From Selaginella moellendorffii (lineage: Eukaryota > Plantae > Lycopodiophyta), in NCBI RefSeq assembly GCF_000143415.4, contig NW_003314270.1, positions 1,286,806 through 1,350,805 on the forward strand: 64,000 bases of DNA, read 5' to 3'. The translations under genes were made by a program, and so were the position numbers. Each line of letters opens with the position of its first letter. The first letter of the stretch is position 1. Positions 52,303 to 62,335 of this stretch are shown piece after piece. The notes under the pieces are model-generated. The model did not search any database. It had not been told where the DNA came from and was given only the letters and a program-made list of their open reading frames with translations.

Positions 52303-54351
52303 CTAGAGCTTGCTGATTTGCTTGACGCTGCCAAAGGCTCTTGCTTTGCTGCGCAGCACCTGTTTCTGGATCTTGCCAGTCGCAGTTTTGTCCAAGGCCG
52401 CGAGAATGACGACGCTCTTTGGCACCATGAACTTTGGCAAATGCTGTCGACAGAACGAGAGTATCTCCTCCTCGTTGCTCCTCACGCCGTACTTGAGAGA
52501 CACAAACGCGCATGGAGACTCGCCCCACTTCTCGTCTGGCCGCGCCACCACAGCAGCTTCTAGCACTGCTGGATGCCTGGAAGAAAAAACGAAATGAGAA
52601 ACAAGCAAGAAATAACTCTTCTTTTACCTGTACAAGATGCTCTCCACTTCCAGGCTGCTAATGTTCTCCCCTCCAGAAATGATAATATCCTTTGCTCGAT
52701 CCTTGATCTCGATGTATCCATCGGGATGCCAAACTGCCAAGTCCCCGGAGTGAAACCATCCTCCTCTAAAACTCTCCAGCGTCGCCTCTGGATTGTTCAA
52801 GTAGCCCTTGAACACCATGTTCCCGCGCATGCAAACTTCGCCAATGGTGACACCGTCCTTGGCAACCGGTTCCAGAGTTTCCGAGTTGAGCACCTGTAAG
52901 CCGTCGAGGCCGACGTATTTCACGCCCTGCCGAGCCTTTAGCCTGGCCTGCTCATCGGGCGAAAGGCTGTCCCATTCGGGATTCCACTCGCACACCATAT
53001 GTTTCCGTGAGCCCGTAGACGTGCGTCACATGAAACCCGAGAGCTTCGATTTTAGCCAGAACTGCTGCCGGAGGAGCCGCACCCGCGGTCATTATCCTGA
53101 CTTGCCTGTGTTGGAGCCGCGAGAACGTTGAGCCCGTTGCCGCACTTATGATCGTGCTGAGCACCGTGGGAGCAGCGCAAAAGTTGGTCACGTTGTGCTC
53201 GGCTATGGCGGCAAAGATTCCTTTGGCCGTCACCTGTGGAAACGAGGAACTTTACTGCTATACGAGCGTAAATGAAGAGAAACGAGGAAAAGCAAACCTG
53301 GCGAAGACATATGTTGGTCCCGGCCAGAGCTGCGACTGCCCAAGGAAAGCACCACCCGTTGCAATGGAAGAGCGGGAGAGTCCAGAGATAGATGCAACCG
53401 TGCTTCATCTCCCAAGTCACGCACTCGCTTAGAGCCGAGAGATAGGCTCCACGGTGTGTAAGCATGACGCCTTTCGGGCTAGCAGTAGTTCCTGACGTGT
53501 AGGACACGGAGATAGTCTCGGTCTCATCCTCTGGCCTGCTCCACTCGAAACTTGGATCCCCTTCGCGGAGAAAATCTTCGTAGTCGCTGCTGCCGGGAGG
53601 CCACGAATTCTCCATGCCTTGGAAAAACTCGTCTCTTATCACCACCACGAAGGGAGCTTGGAACAAAGTCCCTGCTTTCGCTGTCCAGTCACGTAAAGCA
53701 CCGCTAATCAGGTGGAGAAACTCCTCGTCAACAAGAACAGCTTTCACGCCGGAGTGATGGAAGAGCGTCGCGACGGTGCGCTGGTCTAGGCGGATGTTGA
53801 CGCAATTGAGCACGGCCGAGGCCATGGGAACTCCAAACTGGACCTCGTACATGGCAGGAACATTGGGAGCCACCACAGCAACCTTGCAAAACAAGAAAAA
53901 ACTTTTCCATCAGTCCTCACTAGAAACAAACAAGCCATGGATCGTGCAAATCAACGCATGGATTTTGCAAAACAAGAAAAGCGATCCATCAGCCTTCTGC
54001 TTCCTATAGAAAAAACCACTCTCAATCTAGAAACAAACAAGCCATGGATCTTGCAAAACAAGAAAAACTTCTTCTCCTTCCTCTAGAAAAGATCGCTCTC
54101 AATCCCAACAAGCCAACCAACTTCTTGGAATCTCTATCACGGGAACAAGGAGAGACACTTACAACATCGCCAGGGCCAATGCCTCGTCTTCGCAGTGCCG
54201 ATGCTAGCCTCCTGCAGCGCTGGAGCTCCTGAGACCAGGTAAACCGCCGAGAATTGTAGATCACGGCCGGACGCTGGGGATGGATTTGAGCCGCGCGCTC
54301 CAGGAACACAAGCGGGCTAAGCGGCGCGTAATTCGCCTCTCCCAGATCCAT
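52303..54351 (-). pseudogene. Peroxisomal acyl-activating enzyme (AAE clade I) with an apparent frameshift
   Basis: ANYAPLSPL, YTSGTTASPKG, YGLTETYG, GWFHSGD, KDIIISGGENISSLEVE, C-terminal PTS1 SKL; frame changes at ~52996 with no room for an intron. Confidence 0.8.
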
Positions 54352-54607
54352 GGCTCGCTGCGATGCTGCTGGTGGAATCCTCACTCACATCGCGAATCGA
54401 TCGTTGACCGAAACCATAAACCCTATTCCAAAAGGGCAAAGACTAAAACCAGCCGCTATTCGTTCTAGGGTTCCTCCTTAGTCGTTGAGAGTACTAAGGT
54501 TTTCTGTGCCGGAGAGGAGAAATCGAGAGAGGGAGAGGGATTGATCGCTACTGCTGCTAAGAGAACGAGGGATTGACGCACTAGGGCGTGGCGATTAGCG
54601 CAGAGAG

Positions 54608-57567
54608 ATGAGCGGCGCTCGAGGATCGTCATCGTCGGCGACGCCGGCAGCGGCGGCCGCGGCTCCAGCGGCGGCCATCCCAGCCAGCGCGCGCAAGGTC
54701 GTCCAGAACCTCAAAGAAGTGGTCGGGGTAGGGCACGGCGAGGAGGAGATTTTCGCGACGCTCAAGGAGTGTAACATGGACCCTAACGAGACGGCTCAGC
54801 GGCTCATGAGCCAAGGTAAAGCATCCAATGCCTCTCTAGCTCAAAACATTTATCCTCCCTTCGCGCAGATGCCTTCCACGAAGTGAAACGCAAGAGGGAC
54901 AAGAAGAAAGAGGTGTGTTCTCGTCTCTCTTTTGGGTATCTGCATTGTCTCACGCCCTCTCGCAGGCTCCTGCCGGCAGCAAAGACTTGGGCGATGGTAG
55001 ATCGAGAGGCACGACAGCTTACAGGGGCGGGAGAGGATCTGGAAGACTCACGCGCCACTCTCAAAACGGTAGTCCTCTCTCGGTTCTTGGAACGAAAGCT
55101 GATGTTTGCGTGTGTGTTTCCAGAGTCGAATGGTCGTGGCAAGGCTCTGCCTTCCAAGGAAAATGGAAACCATGCGCCTGTTCCTTCGGCTCCACAGTCT
55201 GGGTGAGTTCTATAGAAAAACTCTCTTCCTCCTCTAGCGGCATGGCGTTAAATCTCGAGTTACAGGAGCGCAGTGTCATCAGCTACTCCAGTACTTCCGA
55301 ATGGATCCGTGCAGTACTCCTCGTCAACGGGACTTGTCACGCATGGGTCGTGGAGTAAAATCTCTGGTCACGCAACAATGGCCGAGATGCTAAAGTCCAG
55401 CACCAGCAACGGGCCACACCTCCCACCTAATATGTTAACAGCGGGTACCGGACAGCAGTTCTCGTCTTCTGGAATGTACTCGTCCAGTGATCCTGTGCAT
55501 CATCCTTTTCCTGACCAACGGGTTATCAGGCGTGAGAAGCCTATAGGCGACAGGTCGGCGGCATCGGTTCCAGGCGGTGGATTGCCTTCGCCGCCTCACC
55601 TGCAAGATGATCGGTCCGGTAGTCCTCCTGGACTCCAAGAGACGAACAAGTTTCCAGATACAGGAGCTCGGCAGACTTCTGGATATCGATCGGCAGCACT
55701 TGGAAATGGAAGGCCTGCGTATCAGCAACAACAGTCTGTAAATAAAAGTAAGCTTCTCCTTTGCTCTTGGTTTTTGTTTCAGAGCGCTGATCTCGGTTAT
55801 AACAGCTACTGGACCCAACATGGAGTGGAAGCCAAAAGTAGGGGCTCAAGAAGCTGTCACGGCGTCTGGACTAAACTCTCTGGAGAGGGTTCTGACAGAG
55901 GCCCCAGCTTCGGATATCTCTGAGGCTGAGGTGTTGTCTGTTGCAGCGAAGTTCCAAAATCTTTCGGCCCGTGATGAGCAGCAAGTAATAATGCCTAACA
56001 ACTTTCAGTCTCAGGGAGATTTGGGCCTTAGTTTTGGTAGCTTTGGTGAGCCCCTTGGTTCTTCTCTTCCTTCTGGTTTCAGTTCGGAGGATGGTCTCGA
56101 CATCTCTGGCTCTTCTGAAGCGTCAGTGGCCAAGGATATCCTGCGTGAGCAGTCACCTTCTGGGTAAGAAACTCGTCGCTGTTTCCTTCTATCTTTATGT
56201 CTACTGATGGTTTTCGTGCAGAGTGGATGCCGTGGCTCCTGATGAAACCCCTTTGCATCAGGATGATGACATACCTGTTCAAAGAGAGAACGCGACTTCA
56301 GCTAGTATTCCTGCCACCTATACACAGGTCGACGTCACGAAATTGCGGTCGACTCAACAAGCTCCACAATACCCGTATCTGCCGTCGGCACCAAACTACT
56401 CTACAAGTATTGGGATGGTTTCTCAAGTTCCCAGTGGCCAACACAGTTTTGACTCGCAAGTCCCTCATCTTCAAGACATGTCCAGTGTTCCAACTTCACT
56501 GGTGAGTCGCATCAATTGATATTTTCTGGTCTTGACTTTTTATTTTTACAGAAGCAGCAATACGCGGATTCTGCTACGAGTTTTTACTCGCCATCTCTTC
56601 GGCCTGGTTCTGACGCTGACGCCCGTTATGCGCAATACAGTTCTACCGCGAAGTACAATGGAGGAGTAGTGATGTCTGCTCAACACCTTCCAGCGCACGA
56701 GGTACTAAACCGCAGTTTCCTATGATTGATTTCTTATGTTTAATCGTTTGTTTTCAGGCATCCAATTCCACTGCCTTGTCAACCAGTAGCACAGTGTCTC
56801 AAGTGCCACAGGCAAGTGCGCCTACAGCTCCTCAGCAACCGCTTCAAGTTCACGCTTACCCGGCTCAGCCAACCGGTATGCCAGTGGGTCACTATGGCAA
56901 CGTTTTCGGATACCAGTACCCGAGCTACACCTTCGTGCCTTCGCCATATCAGCACAGCTACGCAGCTAATTATCCACAGCCCCCGGTCAGCAGTTACTCA
57001 CCATCAGCTAATTACGCCCCCGCCATGAAGTACACGCTACCTCAATACAAGCCAGGGAGTGCCACAGCCAATGCTCCCACTGGAGGCTACGGCGGATACG
57101 GCACTGCGTCGTCAATGTACGCGGCAAATCCGACGGCAACGGCCTCAAACACGCCCGGGTACGAGGATGGCAGCGCTGCTCAATACAAGGACAGCAACCT
57201 TTACGTCCCCGGTCCACAGGTGCCGAGTGTTTCTATTCGTTTTCATTCATGTAGAGATGATTTTTTTCTCGACAGGGAGACGGTGCAAGGCTGTGGCAAC
57301 TGACAAACGACATAGCGGCGGCACAACAGACGAGCTCGTTCTACGCCTTGTCCAGCCAAAACCAGCACACGTACACGCAACCGAGCAGCCACACGCATCC
57401 GATAAACGGCTACACGAGCTTGTACCACCAGCCGGGGCCTGCCGGGAGCGCTCACCAGGTGATCCAACAGCCTCAACCTTTGGGCGGTGCTGCCGGGAGC
57501 ACCCAAGTTGGAGCCACTAATTATCACCAACAGCTACAACGGATCCAGCAGCAGCAGCAGCAACAGC

Positions 57568-57598
<31 letters not shown>

Positions 57599-57614
57599 GA
57601 GCTGGAACTACTGA
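54608..57614 (+). CDS. GBF-interacting protein 1-like (DUF1296, UBA-like N-terminus), low-complexity, C-terminal polyQ
   Basis: IPASARKVVQNLKEVV..EEIFATLKECNMDPNETAQRL..FHEVKRKRDKKKE; MEWKPK; LSFGSFG; KYTLPQYKP. Confidence 0.88.
57546..57596 (+). repeat. (CAG/CAA)n coding polyQ tract
   Basis: About 17 Gln codons. Confidence 0.9.
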
Positions 57615-58216
57615 TCCTGGCGAACGATGCAAGGCTTTTTTTTTTGTTCTTGGAGATCGATCGGCCGAAGATGTGGAGGTTTTCTCTTTACCACTGCTAC
57701 TGAATCAAACTAACCATTGTACTGTTTTCCTTGAAACTTGTAGGAAGTTTGTGGGAGCTCGTGCTTTTCTATCTTTTGCTTTGTTTCAGCCTAAAGAAAT
57801 CGAAGAGATGTATATATGGTTTTCACAAAATATATCAATACTATATAAATTTCGTGCTCGCACACACGCGAAAGATTCTCTCGAGCTGACAAGGTGTTAA
57901 TGTTTAATTGTGTGTTCTTTGGCGGGCATATTCCACCACTACCGCCGCCCGCCGCTCATATATATATCTTGCTGTCCTCAGTACCTGGTTTACTTTTCCC
58001 TCTTCTGGTTAGGGTTTGAGCGCCTAGGGTTATCGCCCCATTTCTGTTCTTGGGGAGAGAGCAGGGCTTGGCGGCGGGCATCCTTGTCATAATCGCGCGC
58101 CTCGCAGCTCCCGCAGCGATCTAGCGCCGAATTCCAGGTGAAATCTCGCTTCTTTGTCTCTTCTTTCCGCTGCGGGCGAGCTTGAAATGTGTGCGGGTTT
58201 CTTGGATTTCCAGGCA

Positions 58217-60409
58217 ATGGCGGTGGCGCACGCACAAATGGTAAGCTTGCTGCTGCGGTGGGAGATTGTGTGTTTTCTCACGCGAGAATGTAGGTCGGGA
58301 ACTCGTTCATCAACCAATATTACAATGTGCTCCACCAATCGCCACAGGTGGTGCATCGGTTTTACACCAATGCGAGCTGCCTCACTCGAGCAGAAGCCGG
58401 TCCAGAGGGCCAAGCGGACACTGTCTTCTCACAAAGTGTACGATTCTTTCTCGTTTCCCTGGCTCTAGCTGAGGATTGAGTGGTTTTTCTTTTTCCTTTT
58501 TTTTTTTTTGTTCTTGTTCTTGTTCTCAGGGGATTCATGAGAAGGTGATGTCTCTAGACTACGTCGGGCTCAGAGCTGAGATTAAGACTGTGGACTGTCA
58601 AGATTCGTATTCTGGCTCGGTTCTTGTGATGGTCACTGGATCGCTGTCAAACCGCTCCAATGGAAGGCGCGACTTTGTCCAGACCTTTTTCTTGGCACCA
58701 CAGGAGAAGGGCTATTTCGTACTGAACGACATTTTCCGGTATTTGGACGAGCCGCAGGTTTCGACCATGTCATACGTTGTGGCGAATGGTCCTCAAGAGC
58801 ATTCTCCGACTCCAGAGTCTGGTAAATTTGTCTGCTGTTTTTCGATTTGTGTGCCTTCGTTAAGCTGTTTCGTGCACTGTGTAGTTCCGGATACTACTCA
58901 TTTGGAAGTGAGTGAGGCTACGCCTGTTGCTACTGAAGAGCAAATAGATGAGGGATACGATATACCAGATGCGGACGAAGAGGTTTTGGTGGAGGAGACT
59001 GTCCAGAATACCGTACCTTTGGATGCTGACGAAGTTCTGGACATCGAGGATTCGCAATCGCAAGCAGACGAGCCAAAGAAATCGTACGCATCAATCGTAA
59101 GTTGATACTTACAAAGCTTCTCTTGAATGTAATGGGCGTAAGTGGCAATGCTGCAGTTGAGGGTTGTCAAAGCCGGAGGCGGTGACAGTGTCCAGCATGT
59201 TCTTCAACACAGCCCGAAGCCTCCGCCGTCAATTCCCGCTGAAAAACCTGCGTTGCCTGTGCCTCAAACAGTGGTGCAAGAAAGTCCAGTGGTATCTCCG
59301 CCGATCGAAACAACCGATGAGACTGCTGCAGCTCCCGACACACAAGGTATGATCAGTGAATACCATGCGGCTAGTGGTAACCATCGTCTTGTTGATCAGG
59401 TGATGGAAAATCGATTTACATCAAGAACCTCCCAATGTCCGTCACCACTGCGCAACTTGAGGAGGAGTTCCACAAATTTGGGACTGTAAAGCCGGGAACT
59501 AATATCAAAAAGGTAAATAGGCAAAAGATTATTCTGTAGTTCCTGCCAACCAAGTAATCCTGTTTTTTATCAGCAAAACAATGTTTGCTACGCGTTTCTC
59601 GAGTTTGAAGATGCAAGCTCGGCACGATCAGCGATCCAGGTAGTTGCCCGTGACAGTATTGCTGCATTGAATGTTTTCTAACAGTAATCGTTATTATTCA
59701 GGCCTCCGGCTCGTTTCAAATCAGCGGCAAGCCTGTCATGATCGAGGAGAAGAGGCCGCTTAGCGCTAGAGGTATTGTTTTATGGTTGATGGAGTCAATC
59801 CGTAACATGTTCCTTTCCTTGTCCTCTACCGTGCCAGGCTACCGAACAGGGGGCCGGGGAAGGGGAAATCGAAATGACGGGTCTCGAGGCAGGGGCTACT
59901 ACAACCGTGGTGCTGCTGGTCCCGCTCCTCCTACCGCTGCTCCTGGCGGTGGTGGCGGCGGTGGCGGCAGCGGCAGCGGTGGCAACAGGAACTACGAGCA
60001 GGGAAACCGGGGCCGGGGCTCTCGCGGGGGATACAACAGCGCTAACAACAATCCAGGGGACGGTGGCCGAGATGGTGGTCGCTCCAACAGCGAAGAATAT
60101 CATCCGCGGTACGAGAGCCAGGGCCACAACTACAACAATAACTACACCAACACCAACGCCACCAATGCTGCTACCAACAGTGGCAACTCGAGCGCCGGCC
60201 ACCACCACCACCAAGCCAACAGCAGCAACACCGGCAGCAGCAACAACCACGGCTATCCAAACTCGAGGCCTCCTCGCCGGTACGTCAGCCGCGGCAACAA
60301 CAACAACAGCAACAGTTCCAACAACAGCAACAACCCCAATTACAATCGAAGCTCCTCGTCCTCGACTGGCGGCGCTCCTGCTGCTCCTCCCGCGGCGGTC
60401 ACAGCTTGA
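58217..60409 (+). CDS. G3BP: G3BP-like NTF2 + RRM + RGG protein
   Basis: VGNSFINQYYNVLHQSP..RFY, FVQTFFLAPQEKGYFVLNDIFRY, KKSYASI, SIYIKNLP/CYAFLEF RRM, RGG-rich and Asn-rich tail. Confidence 0.92.
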
Positions 60410-60943
60410 TTGAGGCGAGATCTCTGGGGAGTGGAAGCAACTCCCCGGTTATCTCTGGTCTCTGTTCATCCGTGATCGTCGCGTCGTCGTCGTCATCGTC
60501 GCCTTCCTTCGGCTCTCTTGGTGGGATTGTATTCATTCGCAAAATTTTTGTCAGGCTTCTCCATACTACTACAGGCAAGCTCTCTTTCTCTCTTCCTCGT
60601 CTTGGTTTTTCTTCTTTCTATTTTCCTTGATTTTTCCTGTGTAGAAAGGTGCGTAGTTTTAGTTTTGGTAGCTCTACTATCATCGAGTGATTGACCGGGT
60701 TTGTGTAACGGGCATTAATTTTGTCAAAAAAGTGACTTCTTCGAATAATCAGGCATATTCTTTTAGGGATATTCTGTGTTGTAAGGAATATTCTGCTTCC
60801 ATCCCTCGTCGCCACACGGCTTGGGTAGGCCGTCTCGTTCCTTCGGTGCCCTGCCCTCGAAATTTCTTCCTCTAGGTCGGTTCCATCGGCGCCGATCAAT
60901 TCAATCGGCTCGATCGCGTCCCCCGGGCGCCGAAGCAGCAGCG

Positions 60944-62335
60944 ATGGGCGCGGGCTTTTCCAAGGAGGAGCAGCTGTATCAAGCCGTCCACAACGGGAAC
61001 CATCAGCTTGTGAAATCTCTCCGGCGCGATGGAGCGTCTTTGGAGGTTCGTGTAGAGATTTTGCTTCTTCTTCGTCTTCTTCTCATCAGTGGGGTGATAG
61101 TTTCTGGACAAGGAGGGCAGGACCCCCTTGATTTTGGCCTGTGCTCGCCAAGATCTGTTTGACATGGTCGTCACTTTGCTCAATCTCGGGGCTAATATAA
61201 ATGCCTATAGACCTGGTAAGTCAGCTCTCTCTTTCGTTCTAGACTATGTAGATAGTTTACTCTATCGCGTGGAATTTGTTCATGTAGGCTCGAATGGTGG
61301 ATTTCCATTGCATCATGCCGCGAAAAGGGGCCTGGAGAGAACTGTGATTCTGCTTATATCCAGAGGAGGTCGGGAAGTTTTTTTTTTCTGAGTCACTACT
61401 ACTGAAGTCATTCTGTGCATGCAGCTGATCCTTTATGCATCAATGACGATGGACAAACTCCTTTGGATATGGCCAGACTACGGGGACATACTTCGATCGT
61501 CCGGATTATAGAGGCAAGCGAGCGAGCGAAAATTCTATTTATTTTGACGAGGAAACTTTTTCAGGATCGGATAGCTCTGTTTACTGGGATGATTCGTGAA
61601 GTTTCGGGGCCTGGCTTGCTGGAGGTCTTTGTACCGCAATGGGTGACCAAGAAAGTGTAAGTTTTGCTTGGCTCTTGCAACGTCATGGACTGCTTTGTGT
61701 TTTTAGGTGGGTTGCCGTTGTCCCAGTTCAAGCTAACCAGAGACATCCTCCAAGGCACGAGCTCGCTATTTATCAGTCTCCCAAGGTCTGGGTGTTTACT
61801 TGCCCGATTGTTCTTTTGATGTATATGAAGGATTTCTTTGGTAGGTTGCGGCGCCGAGAACCGTCATTTCACTCTGGAAGGCGGATCTGGAAGAGCCAAA
61901 GTGGAACACTGGAGCACCAGTTTTGATAGTCACAGAAAGAGCTACAAGTAAGCTTCTGGTTTGCTTTCTTTTCTCTAGCAGCAAGCTTGTTTTTCTGTAG
62001 AGATGAAATACAAGTTCCTGTCTGAAGCGGACGGTGACACCGCTCAACTGGAGAAACTGTACAGAGCATGCAGAGGAATACCTCCGGTGAGACATCATCC
62101 CAGTTTTTCTTTCTGTCCGTCTAGACTTCGCTGTTTTTTTTCTTGGCAGGTGGTTCCAGCAATGGGATACCCTGTTCCTCCACTTCCTGACAACCAGGAC
62201 GACGTTGCACTGGCTATGGCATTAGATGCTTCTCTTCAGTCTGCTGGAGCGAATGGAGGATGGGGTGACCAACCCGGCAGTGAAAACTACAACGGATGGG
62301 GAGTTCAACAACAAAATCAACAACACCACCCCCAA

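Follow-up and report, generated by a model that had tools for sequence, protein, structure and literature searches.

We analyzed a 64,000-nucleotide (nt) stretch of the Selaginella moellendorffii genome (contig NW_003314270.1, positions 1,286,806 to 1,350,805 of the forward strand), hereafter referred to as the window. Positions 54608-60409 of the window are filled by two complete protein-coding genes, both on the + strand. The upstream gene (gene A) codes for a protein of the DUF1296/GIP1_N family, and the downstream gene (gene B) codes for a G3BP. The two gene models were assembled manually, using GT-AG introns of 50-92 nt, and have no internal stops; the coordinates of genes, exons and domains are collected in Table 1. 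The locus itself consists of ordinary new members of two known families. A preliminary description of this region, made from the sequence alone, had read the pair as a possible stress-granule module, in which the gene A protein would be the plant equivalent of animal UBAP2L and would be genetically linked to its partner, G3BP. All database searches reported below used either single exons or database homologs as queries. The full-length gene A protein itself was not recovered from the protein collections searched.

Table 1. Genes, exons and protein features of the DUF1296-G3BP locus (positions refer to the window)
Feature	Position	Strand	Remarks
Gene A, coding region	54608-57614	+	10 exons, 834 amino acids; introns of 50-63 nt, all GT-AG; spliced model without stops
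Gene A, exons	54608-54815, 54869-54912, 54966-55068, 55124-55202, 55266-55747, 55806-56163, 56222-56501, 56552-56701, 56758-57219, 57276-57614	+	
Gene A, GIP1_N (UBA-like) domain, residues 24-84	54677-54912	+	split by intron 1; Pfam PF06972, AlphaFold2, Foldseek
Gene A, basic patch and RGG segment (KRKRDKKKE … YRGGRGSGR), residues 76-111	54886-55046	+	split by intron 2; spliced translation
Gene A, FG block, residues 364-388 (QQVIMPNNFQSQGDLGLSFGSFGEP)	55979-56053	+	L-S-F-G at 56027-56038, F-G-S-F at 56033-56044
Gene A, Q/S/A/P/Y-rich low-complexity tail, residues 474-834	56367-57611	+	17 Q at 57546-57596
Spacer between gene A stop and gene B start	57615-58216	+	602 nt; gene A 3' untranslated region, gene B 5' untranslated region with an intron at 58138-58213
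Gene B, coding region	58217-60409	+	9 coding exons, 560 amino acids; spliced model
Gene B, exons	58217-58240, 58294-58437, 58530-58821, 58885-59096, 59157-59346, 59400-59512, 59574-59639, 59702-59771, 59838-60409	+	
Gene B, NTF2-like domain, residues 9-130	58294-58751	+	split by one intron; Pfam NTF2, E 2.3e-7 and 4.7e-22 (its two exons)
Gene B, acidic disordered linker, residues 164-219	58914-59081	+	translation
Gene B, RRM, residues 292-363 (RNP2 IYIKNL, RNP1 CYAFLEF)	59411-59749	+	split by two introns; Pfam RRM_1, E 6e-6 (first of the RRM exons)
Gene B, RGG-rich region (residues 370-436), then Asn/Ser-rich tail containing HHHH (residues 437-543)	59768-60355	+	translation

Both gene models could be compared with transcript data. 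For this purpose, contigs from four public runs, which belong to four studies, were aligned to a 5,951-base part of the window. The RNA origin of these runs was guessed by the tool, and the actual evidence is the loss of GT-AG introns from the contigs. Intron-less contigs reproduce at least seven introns in each gene, out of nine in gene A and eight coding introns in gene B. All introns derived from the contigs agree with the two models, and three further joints were counted without positions. The contigs fixed one ambiguous gene A intron as 55748-55805. They also revealed the intron in the 5' untranslated region of gene B, a 76-nt GT-AG joint directly before the ATG. Since these contigs lack the GT-AG introns, both genes must be transcribed. 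Contig depth is present in every bin across the spacer. A read-through transcript or a fusion gene was rejected, as among the contig pieces listed none joins gene A to gene B. Instead, the two genes are represented by separate contigs and are transcribed in the same runs. Two intact, transcribed genes with the features listed in Table 1 are thus confirmed.

The N-terminus of the gene A protein, described previously as UBA-like, is a GIP1_N domain. Already exon 1 by itself, corresponding to the first 45 of the 60 profile positions, scores well above the Pfam gathering threshold for PF06972 (74.2 bits versus 26.4, E 9e-21). An AlphaFold2 model, based on the alignment of 34 family members, shows a confident three-helix bundle (helices 26-39, 45-54 and 59-68) with a predicted local distance difference test score (pLDDT) of ~90. 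In a Foldseek search against PDB, the best matches of this domain are UBA domains (EDD, hHR23A, EF-Ts and Tap). The RGG segment YRGGRGSGR was found at residues 103-111 (positions 55020-55046), inside residues 92-115, which form a conserved island of the family alignment (0.58 versus the mean of 0.47). The motif IMPNNFQSQGDLGLSFGSFG is likewise present, with FGSF lying exactly at 56033-56044. The Y/Q/P/S-rich tail with its polyQ run was also borne out by the spliced model. From residue 474 onwards the tail consists of 15% Q, 13% S, 12% A, 11% P and 9% Y, and it aligns with the tails of other family members.

Overall, the gene A protein aligns over residues 22-813 of 834 with long DUF1296 members from all land-plant groups. 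Its identity to the eudicot clade annotated as 'like AT3G07660' or 'flocculation protein' is ~31% (E ~1e-65). We used FastTree to place gene A among 60 family members. In the resulting tree (midpoint-rooted; most of the underlying protein is disordered), gene A belongs to a set of lycophyte and bryophyte proteins (support 97). FUST1-like proteins and GIP1 proper fall together into a separate seed-plant clade outside this set. Because of this placement, gene A may be considered at best a co-ortholog of the angiosperm FUST1/GIP1 group, and not a one-to-one ortholog of FUST1. Both this placement and the very short introns agree with an origin from Selaginella.

The downstream gene had been described as a G3BP gene with NTF2, RRM and RGG parts, located about 600 nt away on the same strand, and this is what the spliced model contains. 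All parts typical of G3BPs are present and in order, namely the NTF2-like domain, the acidic linker, the RRM and the RGG-rich region, with both Pfam NTF2 and RRM_1 above cut-offs. Among solved structures, Rasputin from Drosophila and G3BP1/2 from human (E 5e-12) are nearest to the NTF2-like domain, ahead of NTF2 proper. In plant and animal G3BPs alike (AtG3BP1-7, human G3BP1/2 and Rasputin), the NTF2-like domain is followed by an acidic/Pro-rich linker, an RRM and RGG. The acidic/Pro-rich middle region of G3BPs (PMC8222905) is matched by the gene B linker. Gene B differs in having a glycine at the position of human K123 and, after the RGG-rich region, a long tail that is rich in Asn and Ser and includes an HHHH run. 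This tail (positions 60035-60355, + strand) also includes NNNNSNSSNNSNN and has a prion-like composition.

To find out how well the FG block of gene A is conserved, we collected homologs by searching exon 1 against 1.84 billion representative proteins, and two further searches added members. Among the homologs of at least 580 residues found in the first search, 28 of 38 carry FGSF within the pattern V-I-I-P-x-H-L-Q-V-(7)-L-S-F-G-S-F. In the alignment of 32 such blocks, the F, G and F residues are invariant and the V, P and H residues nearly so. This invariance rules out FGSF as a chance tetrapeptide. In the extended set, FGxF occurs at this position in 208 of 236 long members (FGSF in 198, FGAF in five, FGNF in three and FGTF in two). 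Most of the members without FGxF carry FGSL, FGSI or FGTY, so that the looser pattern Φ-x-F-G-[ST]-Φ (Φ, hydrophobic residue) is found in ~244 of 248 long members. The motif pointed out in the preliminary description is therefore conserved across the family. The residue directly after FGxF is D in 118 and G in 58 of the 208 members, and in many proteins of the family another FG follows at a distance of five to seven residues. Among the conserved islands in an alignment of 84 sequences, the FG block ranks second (0.65 versus the mean of 0.47), behind GIP1_N. Judging by its conservation, a block that has been kept from liverworts to angiosperms within a fast-evolving disordered region is evidently a functional site.

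Two additional features of the family were noticed. First, many angiosperm DUF1296 proteins (e.g. entries P0323, P0330 and P0334 of our set) have a third conserved FG block, Y-[SN]-F-G-F-[MV]-P-P-M-L-G, ~100 residues past the FG block. NVFGYQY at residues ~616-622 of gene A is only a loose counterpart of it. Second, in the Asteraceae proteins annotated as 'GBF-interacting protein 1' (from Taraxacum, Cynara and Lactuca) the GIP1_N query matches two separate stretches, and an N-terminal duplication may exist. The FG block of these three proteins is the variant FTFGSLD.

What might be the partner of the FG block? The NTF2-like domain of G3BP has a groove that binds peptides of the Φ-x-F-G consensus (PMC8605023). 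The core of G3BP-binding motifs is FGxF, where x is D, E or S; serine is admitted since FGSF occurs in the G3BP-binding nsP3 of Sindbis virus, and in Arabidopsis USP10 (PMC4450067). L-S-F-G-S-F at residues 380-385 of gene A has both this core and, two positions ahead of its first F, a hydrophobic residue. The peptide that spans F382, G383 and F385 of the block is GDLGLSFGSFGEPLGS. The same arrangement of an F-G-[D/E/S]-F core and a hydrophobic residue two positions upstream is found in alphavirus nsP3, USP10 and herpes simplex virus 1 ICP8. In particular, the plant consensus L-S-F-G-S-F-D/G is close to I-T-F-G-D-F-D of Semliki Forest virus nsP3. An FGDF-type motif reportedly mediates the binding of viral proteins by a plant G3BP (PMC8222905).

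The other side of the putative contact appears to be kept as well. In human G3BP1 the groove is formed by F15, F33 and F124, together with H31 and H62. According to the alignments with these solved relatives, F13, H29, F31 and H58 of gene B correspond to F15, H31, F33 and H62 of human G3BP1 (the human numbering was derived from chain offsets). At the position of human F124 gene B has Y118, as does Rasputin (KYYV). The predicted FG-binding groove of gene B is thus retained. Taken together, the data make docking of the DUF1296 FG block on the NTF2-like domain of G3BP a well-founded prediction, and the two probably do interact.

Several points weigh against such docking. The alignment puts a glycine at the position of K123, the residue of human G3BP that contacts the Asp of FGDF (PMC4450067). 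The motif in gene A is followed by G-E-P-L-G, that is, by one acidic residue in five. Two or more acidic residues after the motif are a tendency noted by Panas et al., and mutation of D7 was without effect (PMC4450067). The proposed contact between the products of gene A and gene B is itself a prediction at the sequence level. Finally, as described below, recruitment of G3BP by one member of the family has been explained in a different way.

That member is Arabidopsis FUST1 (AT3G07660), annotated as 'flocculation protein (DUF1296)' and characterized in a 2025 study in Cell Research (PMC12205081). FUST1 combines an N-terminal UBA domain with a prion-like domain and with an N-terminal positive patch on which RNA binding depends. 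The protein is cytoplasmic and binds RNA, and its Tyr-rich prion-like domain drives heat-dependent condensation (PMC12205081). FUST1 enriches G3BPs both in TurboID proximity labeling and in immunoprecipitation with mass spectrometry, and some of the interactors were validated by co-immunoprecipitation (PMC12205081). Its condensates partition G3BP5 in vitro and form before G3BP5 joins (PMC12205081). In fust1 mutants stress-granule assembly is delayed, and the protein is needed for thermotolerance (PMC12205081). The condensation behavior is known for the Arabidopsis, maize, soybean and Chinese cabbage proteins (PMC12205081). The authors call FUST1 a novel protein found only in land plants, mention neither UBAP2L nor the FG block, and credit the recruitment of G3BP to condensate partitioning, with no G3BP-binding motif mapped (PMC12205081).

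Gene A shares with FUST1 the Pfam GIP1_N domain with its UBA-like N-terminus, the positive patch, the disordered regions and the Tyr-rich prion-like tail, and it aligns end to end with the FUST1 clade. It differs in that the identity is only ~31% and the relationship is not one-to-one. Heat-dependent condensation of the gene A protein is predicted by analogy. Based on this analogy, we propose the following mechanism. Under stress, the gene A protein would condense with RNA through its tail and basic patch, as shown for FUST1. It would then recruit G3BP dimers, with the Φ-x-F-G-S-F block inserted into the hydrophobic groove that their NTF2-like domain provides. Such an insertion would mirror that of UBAP2L (peptide 515-528, F518/F523), USP10 and alphavirus nsP3 on animal G3BP. 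Ligands of the nsP3/USP10 type act by capping or hijacking G3BP, and USP10 is an inhibitor of granules. An RNA-binding, condensing scaffold such as gene A would be expected to promote granules instead, as UBAP2L and Caprin-1 do.

The name of the family suggests a different role. Descriptions of GIP1 proper present it as a bZIP co-factor in the nucleus, which counts against a general stress-granule function. If gene A acted like GIP1 proper, it would be a nuclear co-factor or chaperone of bZIP proteins (GBF), and the FG block would serve NTF2, other FG-binding transport factors or self-association rather than G3BP. The family takes its name from GBF-interacting protein 1, and in a paper of 2026 GIP1 again figures as a chaperone for condensates of GBF1. 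GIP1 proper keeps the variant FTFGSLD, so the FG block is not confined to the FUST1 branch. Moreover, FG motifs bind also NTF2 and the UBA and NTF2-like domains of Tap, and the complex of the Tap UBA domain with an FxFG peptide is among the structural matches of gene A. Deletion of the DUF region of UBAP2L, too, alters its nucleo-cytoplasmic distribution (PMC7205891). However, DUF1296 proteins have been repeatedly caught in plant mRNA-interactome captures (PMC7226388), and FUST1 is cytoplasmic, RNA-binding and associated with G3BPs by two approaches, proximity labeling and immunoprecipitation with mass spectrometry (PMC12205081). In our tree GIP1 proper represents a derived angiosperm branch nested in the FUST1-like clade, and therefore the ancestral role is more likely the one that is shared with bryophyte and lycophyte forms. 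In addition, L-S-F-G-S-F closely fits the consensus of G3BP ligands. For these reasons we consider a GIP1-like role of gene A unlikely and retain recruitment of G3BP as the preferred function of the FG block.

The stress-granule role of the DUF1296 family has thus been published already. A literature search found no publication that links DUF1296 or GIP1 with UBAP2L or that names both FUST1 and UBAP2L. 'GBF-interacting protein' and 'stress granule' were found together only in a phosphoproteomics study. The homology to UBAP2L and the FG-groove mechanism therefore appear to be unpublished.

UBAP2L, together with UBAP2 and Drosophila Lingerer, acts upstream of G3BP in granule nucleation, and FUST1 condensing first seems to closely parallel the UBAP2L cores that form upstream of G3BP1. 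The human protein has a UBA domain (residues 49-89), an RGG region (131-190) and a DUF region (495-526) with an FG repeat that binds the NTF2-like domain of G3BP (PMC7205891). Its residues 515-528, NLQFGALQFGSEPV, bind NTF2, and the F518L/F523G substitution uncouples UBAP2L from G3BP (PMC8605023). The order of the elements (UBA, RGG, FG block and low-complexity tail) is the same in gene A (24-84, 103-111, 364-388 and 474-834, respectively), and the UBAP2L peptide resembles LGLSFGSFGEPL of gene A. There are also differences. Most plant members have F-G-S-F, i.e. the FGDF type with F at +3, and not two FG five residues apart. The RGG part of gene A is much shorter, with a single RGG and a basic patch as opposed to ~60 residues in UBAP2L. 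The UBA-like domain of gene A is classed separately, as GIP1_N, while the animal family is represented by Pfam UBA_UBAP2 (PF28540) and UBAP2-Lig (PF12478). The UBAP2L side of our FG-block comparisons was a published 17-residue human peptide.

We looked for traces of common origin in several ways. The GIP1_N profile was compared with 177,635 distinct PDB sequences, and its best and nearly only match was 1wj7_A (residues 41-79), with E 0.058 or ~3e-7 per sequence. The depositors named this entry 'Hypothetical protein (RSGI RUH-015)'. We take it to be the UBA domain of mouse UBAP2L, a tentative identification that the aligned segment fits. A single-sequence PDB search with exon 1 produced no meaningful match, and a profile of the FG block matched nothing in PDB at E up to 10. 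Besides PF06972, a Pfam scan of 34 GIP1_N domains returned only weak matches of UBA/CUE type. PF28540 was not among the matches of any scan, presumably because the Pfam version used does not include this model.

The closest likeness to UBAP2L was found in a paralog. S. moellendorffii has another DUF1296 gene (XP_024529562.1/XP_024519443.1), the product of which is 35% identical to gene A. Its FG block, at residues ~340-370, is SVIIHNQFLASADLNLNFGSLTFGSDED. Within this block, NLNFGSLTFGSD is identical to UBAP2L 515-526 in eight of 12 ungapped positions and has the same spacing of two FGs, F-G-x-L-x-F-G-S. When the block was scanned against 24,736 Pfam models, the sole match was PF12478, UBAP2-Lig (E 0.3 or ~1e-5 for that model). 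For both matches the per-target probability is a fair measure, because UBAP2L had been named in advance; the values of ~3e-7 (1wj7) and ~1e-5 (PF12478) precede correction for the ~35 blocks tried. Alignment of the plant block with the UBAP2L peptide by hhalign placed plant LSFGS on LQFGS of UBAP2L. Once GIP1_N/PF06972 clusters were excluded, the nearest neighbors according to a protein language model were the UBAP2, UBAP2L and Lingerer clusters, with scores of 0.80-0.82. When only residues 100-789 of the paralog were used, i.e. without the UBA part, the neighbors were still clusters of the UBAP2 family.

Each of these signals has its weak side, and the following results count against common ancestry. 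With E 0.058, the match to 1wj7_A falls short of formal significance. In the literature, the 1WJ7 structure is described as a Hook1 domain (PMC5137425), at odds with our tentative identification. Foldseek cannot separate the UBA-like domain of gene A from other UBA domains, and 1WJ7 is absent among the best 50 matches listed. The matches of the fold search are thus generic UBA matches. The match of the paralog to PF12478 remains under the gathering score (11.7 versus 22.2 bits), and the blocks of gene A and of 31 typical plant members produced no PF12478 match at E up to 10. In a third of cases, shuffled proteins too attain language-model scores in the range of 0.80-0.82. By the Pfam criterion of a PF12478 score above the gathering threshold, neither gene A nor the DUF1296 family as a whole belongs to the UBAP2 family.

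It might therefore be argued that the likeness to UBAP2L/Lingerer is convergent: both families would have been assembled from common building blocks, and the FG motif would have arisen independently to fit the groove of G3BP. The same function would then be possible without homology. Short linear motifs evolve easily, as illustrated by viruses, which have gained FGDF independently, and all our sequence signals lie under formal thresholds. The demonstrated similarity is confined to the UBA-like domain and ~12 residues of the FG block. Homologs of FUST1 were found by its authors in land plants only and not in green algae (PMC12205081). On the other hand, convergence would have to account for four elements occurring in the same order and with similar spacing. 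Among all solved UBA domains, the GIP1_N profile selects 1wj7_A, presumably the UBA domain of UBAP2L. The FG block of the Selaginella paralog fits the two-FG spacing of UBAP2L exactly, with eight of 12 residues identical, and the language-model neighbors stay within UBAP2 families even without the UBA part. Convergence consequently seems to us a doubtful explanation, albeit one to be taken more seriously than a GIP1-like role.

Taken together, several weak but mostly independent signals all seem to point to UBAP2/UBAP2L/Lingerer. From the shared layout and motif, we consider it likely that the DUF1296 family works like UBAP2L. That the family is also a distant homolog of UBAP2L/Lingerer is suggested by the weak sequence matches, and we judge the chances of this to be about even. 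The proposal that DUF1296 proteins are the plant equivalent of UBAP2L accordingly stands as far as the layout, the conservation of the FG block and the recruitment of G3BP by FUST1 are concerned, but finds no backing in formal membership of the UBAP2 family. The most far-reaching version of the proposal is that DUF1296 proteins, FUST1 included, are true orthologs of UBAP2L/UBAP2/Lingerer. They would then represent an ancient nucleator whose FG block has been docked in the groove of G3BP since before the plant-animal split, and FUST1 would recruit G3BP in this way and not by unspecific partitioning. This version we regard as tentative, its prospects being slightly worse than even.

The adjacency of gene A and gene B requires a separate consideration. 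It could be the outcome of selection, with the two genes forming a co-regulated module kept together for joint expression. They lie on the same strand with 602 nt between the coding regions, both are transcribed in the same runs, and the two families interact functionally in Arabidopsis. Specific adjacency of two small families is also unlikely a priori, at ~1e-3 per genome by a rough estimate from family sizes and gene number; given this figure, pure chance is unproven. To our knowledge, plants have no operons. We inspected 10 kb on each side of the DUF1296 homolog in two liverworts, one moss and one fern, and of the S. moellendorffii paralog; Selaginella was the only lycophyte genus in this sample. 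Neither gene calls nor tblastn with gene B detected an NTF2/G3BP gene within 10 kb of the homolog in Marchantia paleacea, Riccia sorocarpa, Ceratodon purpureus or Adiantum capillus-veneris. The same two approaches detected none within 10 kb on either side of the Selaginella paralog, which is flanked by PIG-U, HD-Zip and an RRM protein. The neighbor of the Ceratodon homolog is a caleosin gene. The microsynteny is thus not conserved in these liverworts, moss and fern or at the paralog, and the idea that gene A is linked to its G3BP partner as a module finds no support there. Close neighbors are the rule here, since genes across the window are only a few hundred bases apart, with an AMP-binding gene upstream and an ankyrin gene downstream of the pair. 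The listed transcript contigs are separate for gene A and gene B. Furthermore, the pair was picked after the fact among thousands of windows. A selected module is therefore very improbable, and the head-to-tail adjacency most likely arose by coincidence in this lineage, the genome being very densely packed with genes.

Considering all the evidence jointly, we favor, with moderate confidence, the following picture. Gene A and gene B are separate genes; the gene A protein would recruit G3BP via its FG block; the DUF1296 family would be the functional counterpart of UBAP2L/Lingerer in plants and probably its distant homolog; and the adjacency of the two genes would be coincidental. The adjacency, even though it prompted the finding, contributes little. 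The main product of this analysis is a sharp hypothesis, in which the seven-residue block L-S-F-G-S-F-D/G of DUF1296/FUST1 is a candidate G3BP-docking site and the family would stand in plants for UBAP2L/Lingerer. The 2025 publication presented FUST1 as a novel thermosensor, specific to plants, with a priming role in stress-granule formation, and left open both the route of G3BP recruitment and any non-plant relatives. If the binding is true, a single ancestral contact between scaffold and G3BP would be common to stress-granule nucleation in plants and animals. Many of the 'GBF-interacting protein 1-like' annotations would then need revision. A point mutant could also part FUST1 condensation from G3BP recruitment in studies of thermotolerance.

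The surroundings of the two genes may be described briefly. An AMP-binding (acyl-activating) enzyme gene (positions 53052-54384, - strand) is located head to head with gene A. The start codons of the two are ~220 nt apart, and a bidirectional promoter region may be common to both. A gene for an ankyrin-repeat protein (positions ~60941-61660 and beyond, + strand) begins ~530 nt past the gene B stop, so that four genes lie inside ~9 kb of a gene-dense region. There are simple repeats at 57538-57606 (a CAG run coding for polyQ), 58480-58532 (a T-rich tract in an intron) and 59936-59988 (a GGC run coding for polyG), and the public contigs break at all three. Single-base differences were observed among the runs, e.g. 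A>G at 56645 in three of the four, suggesting strain or allele variation.

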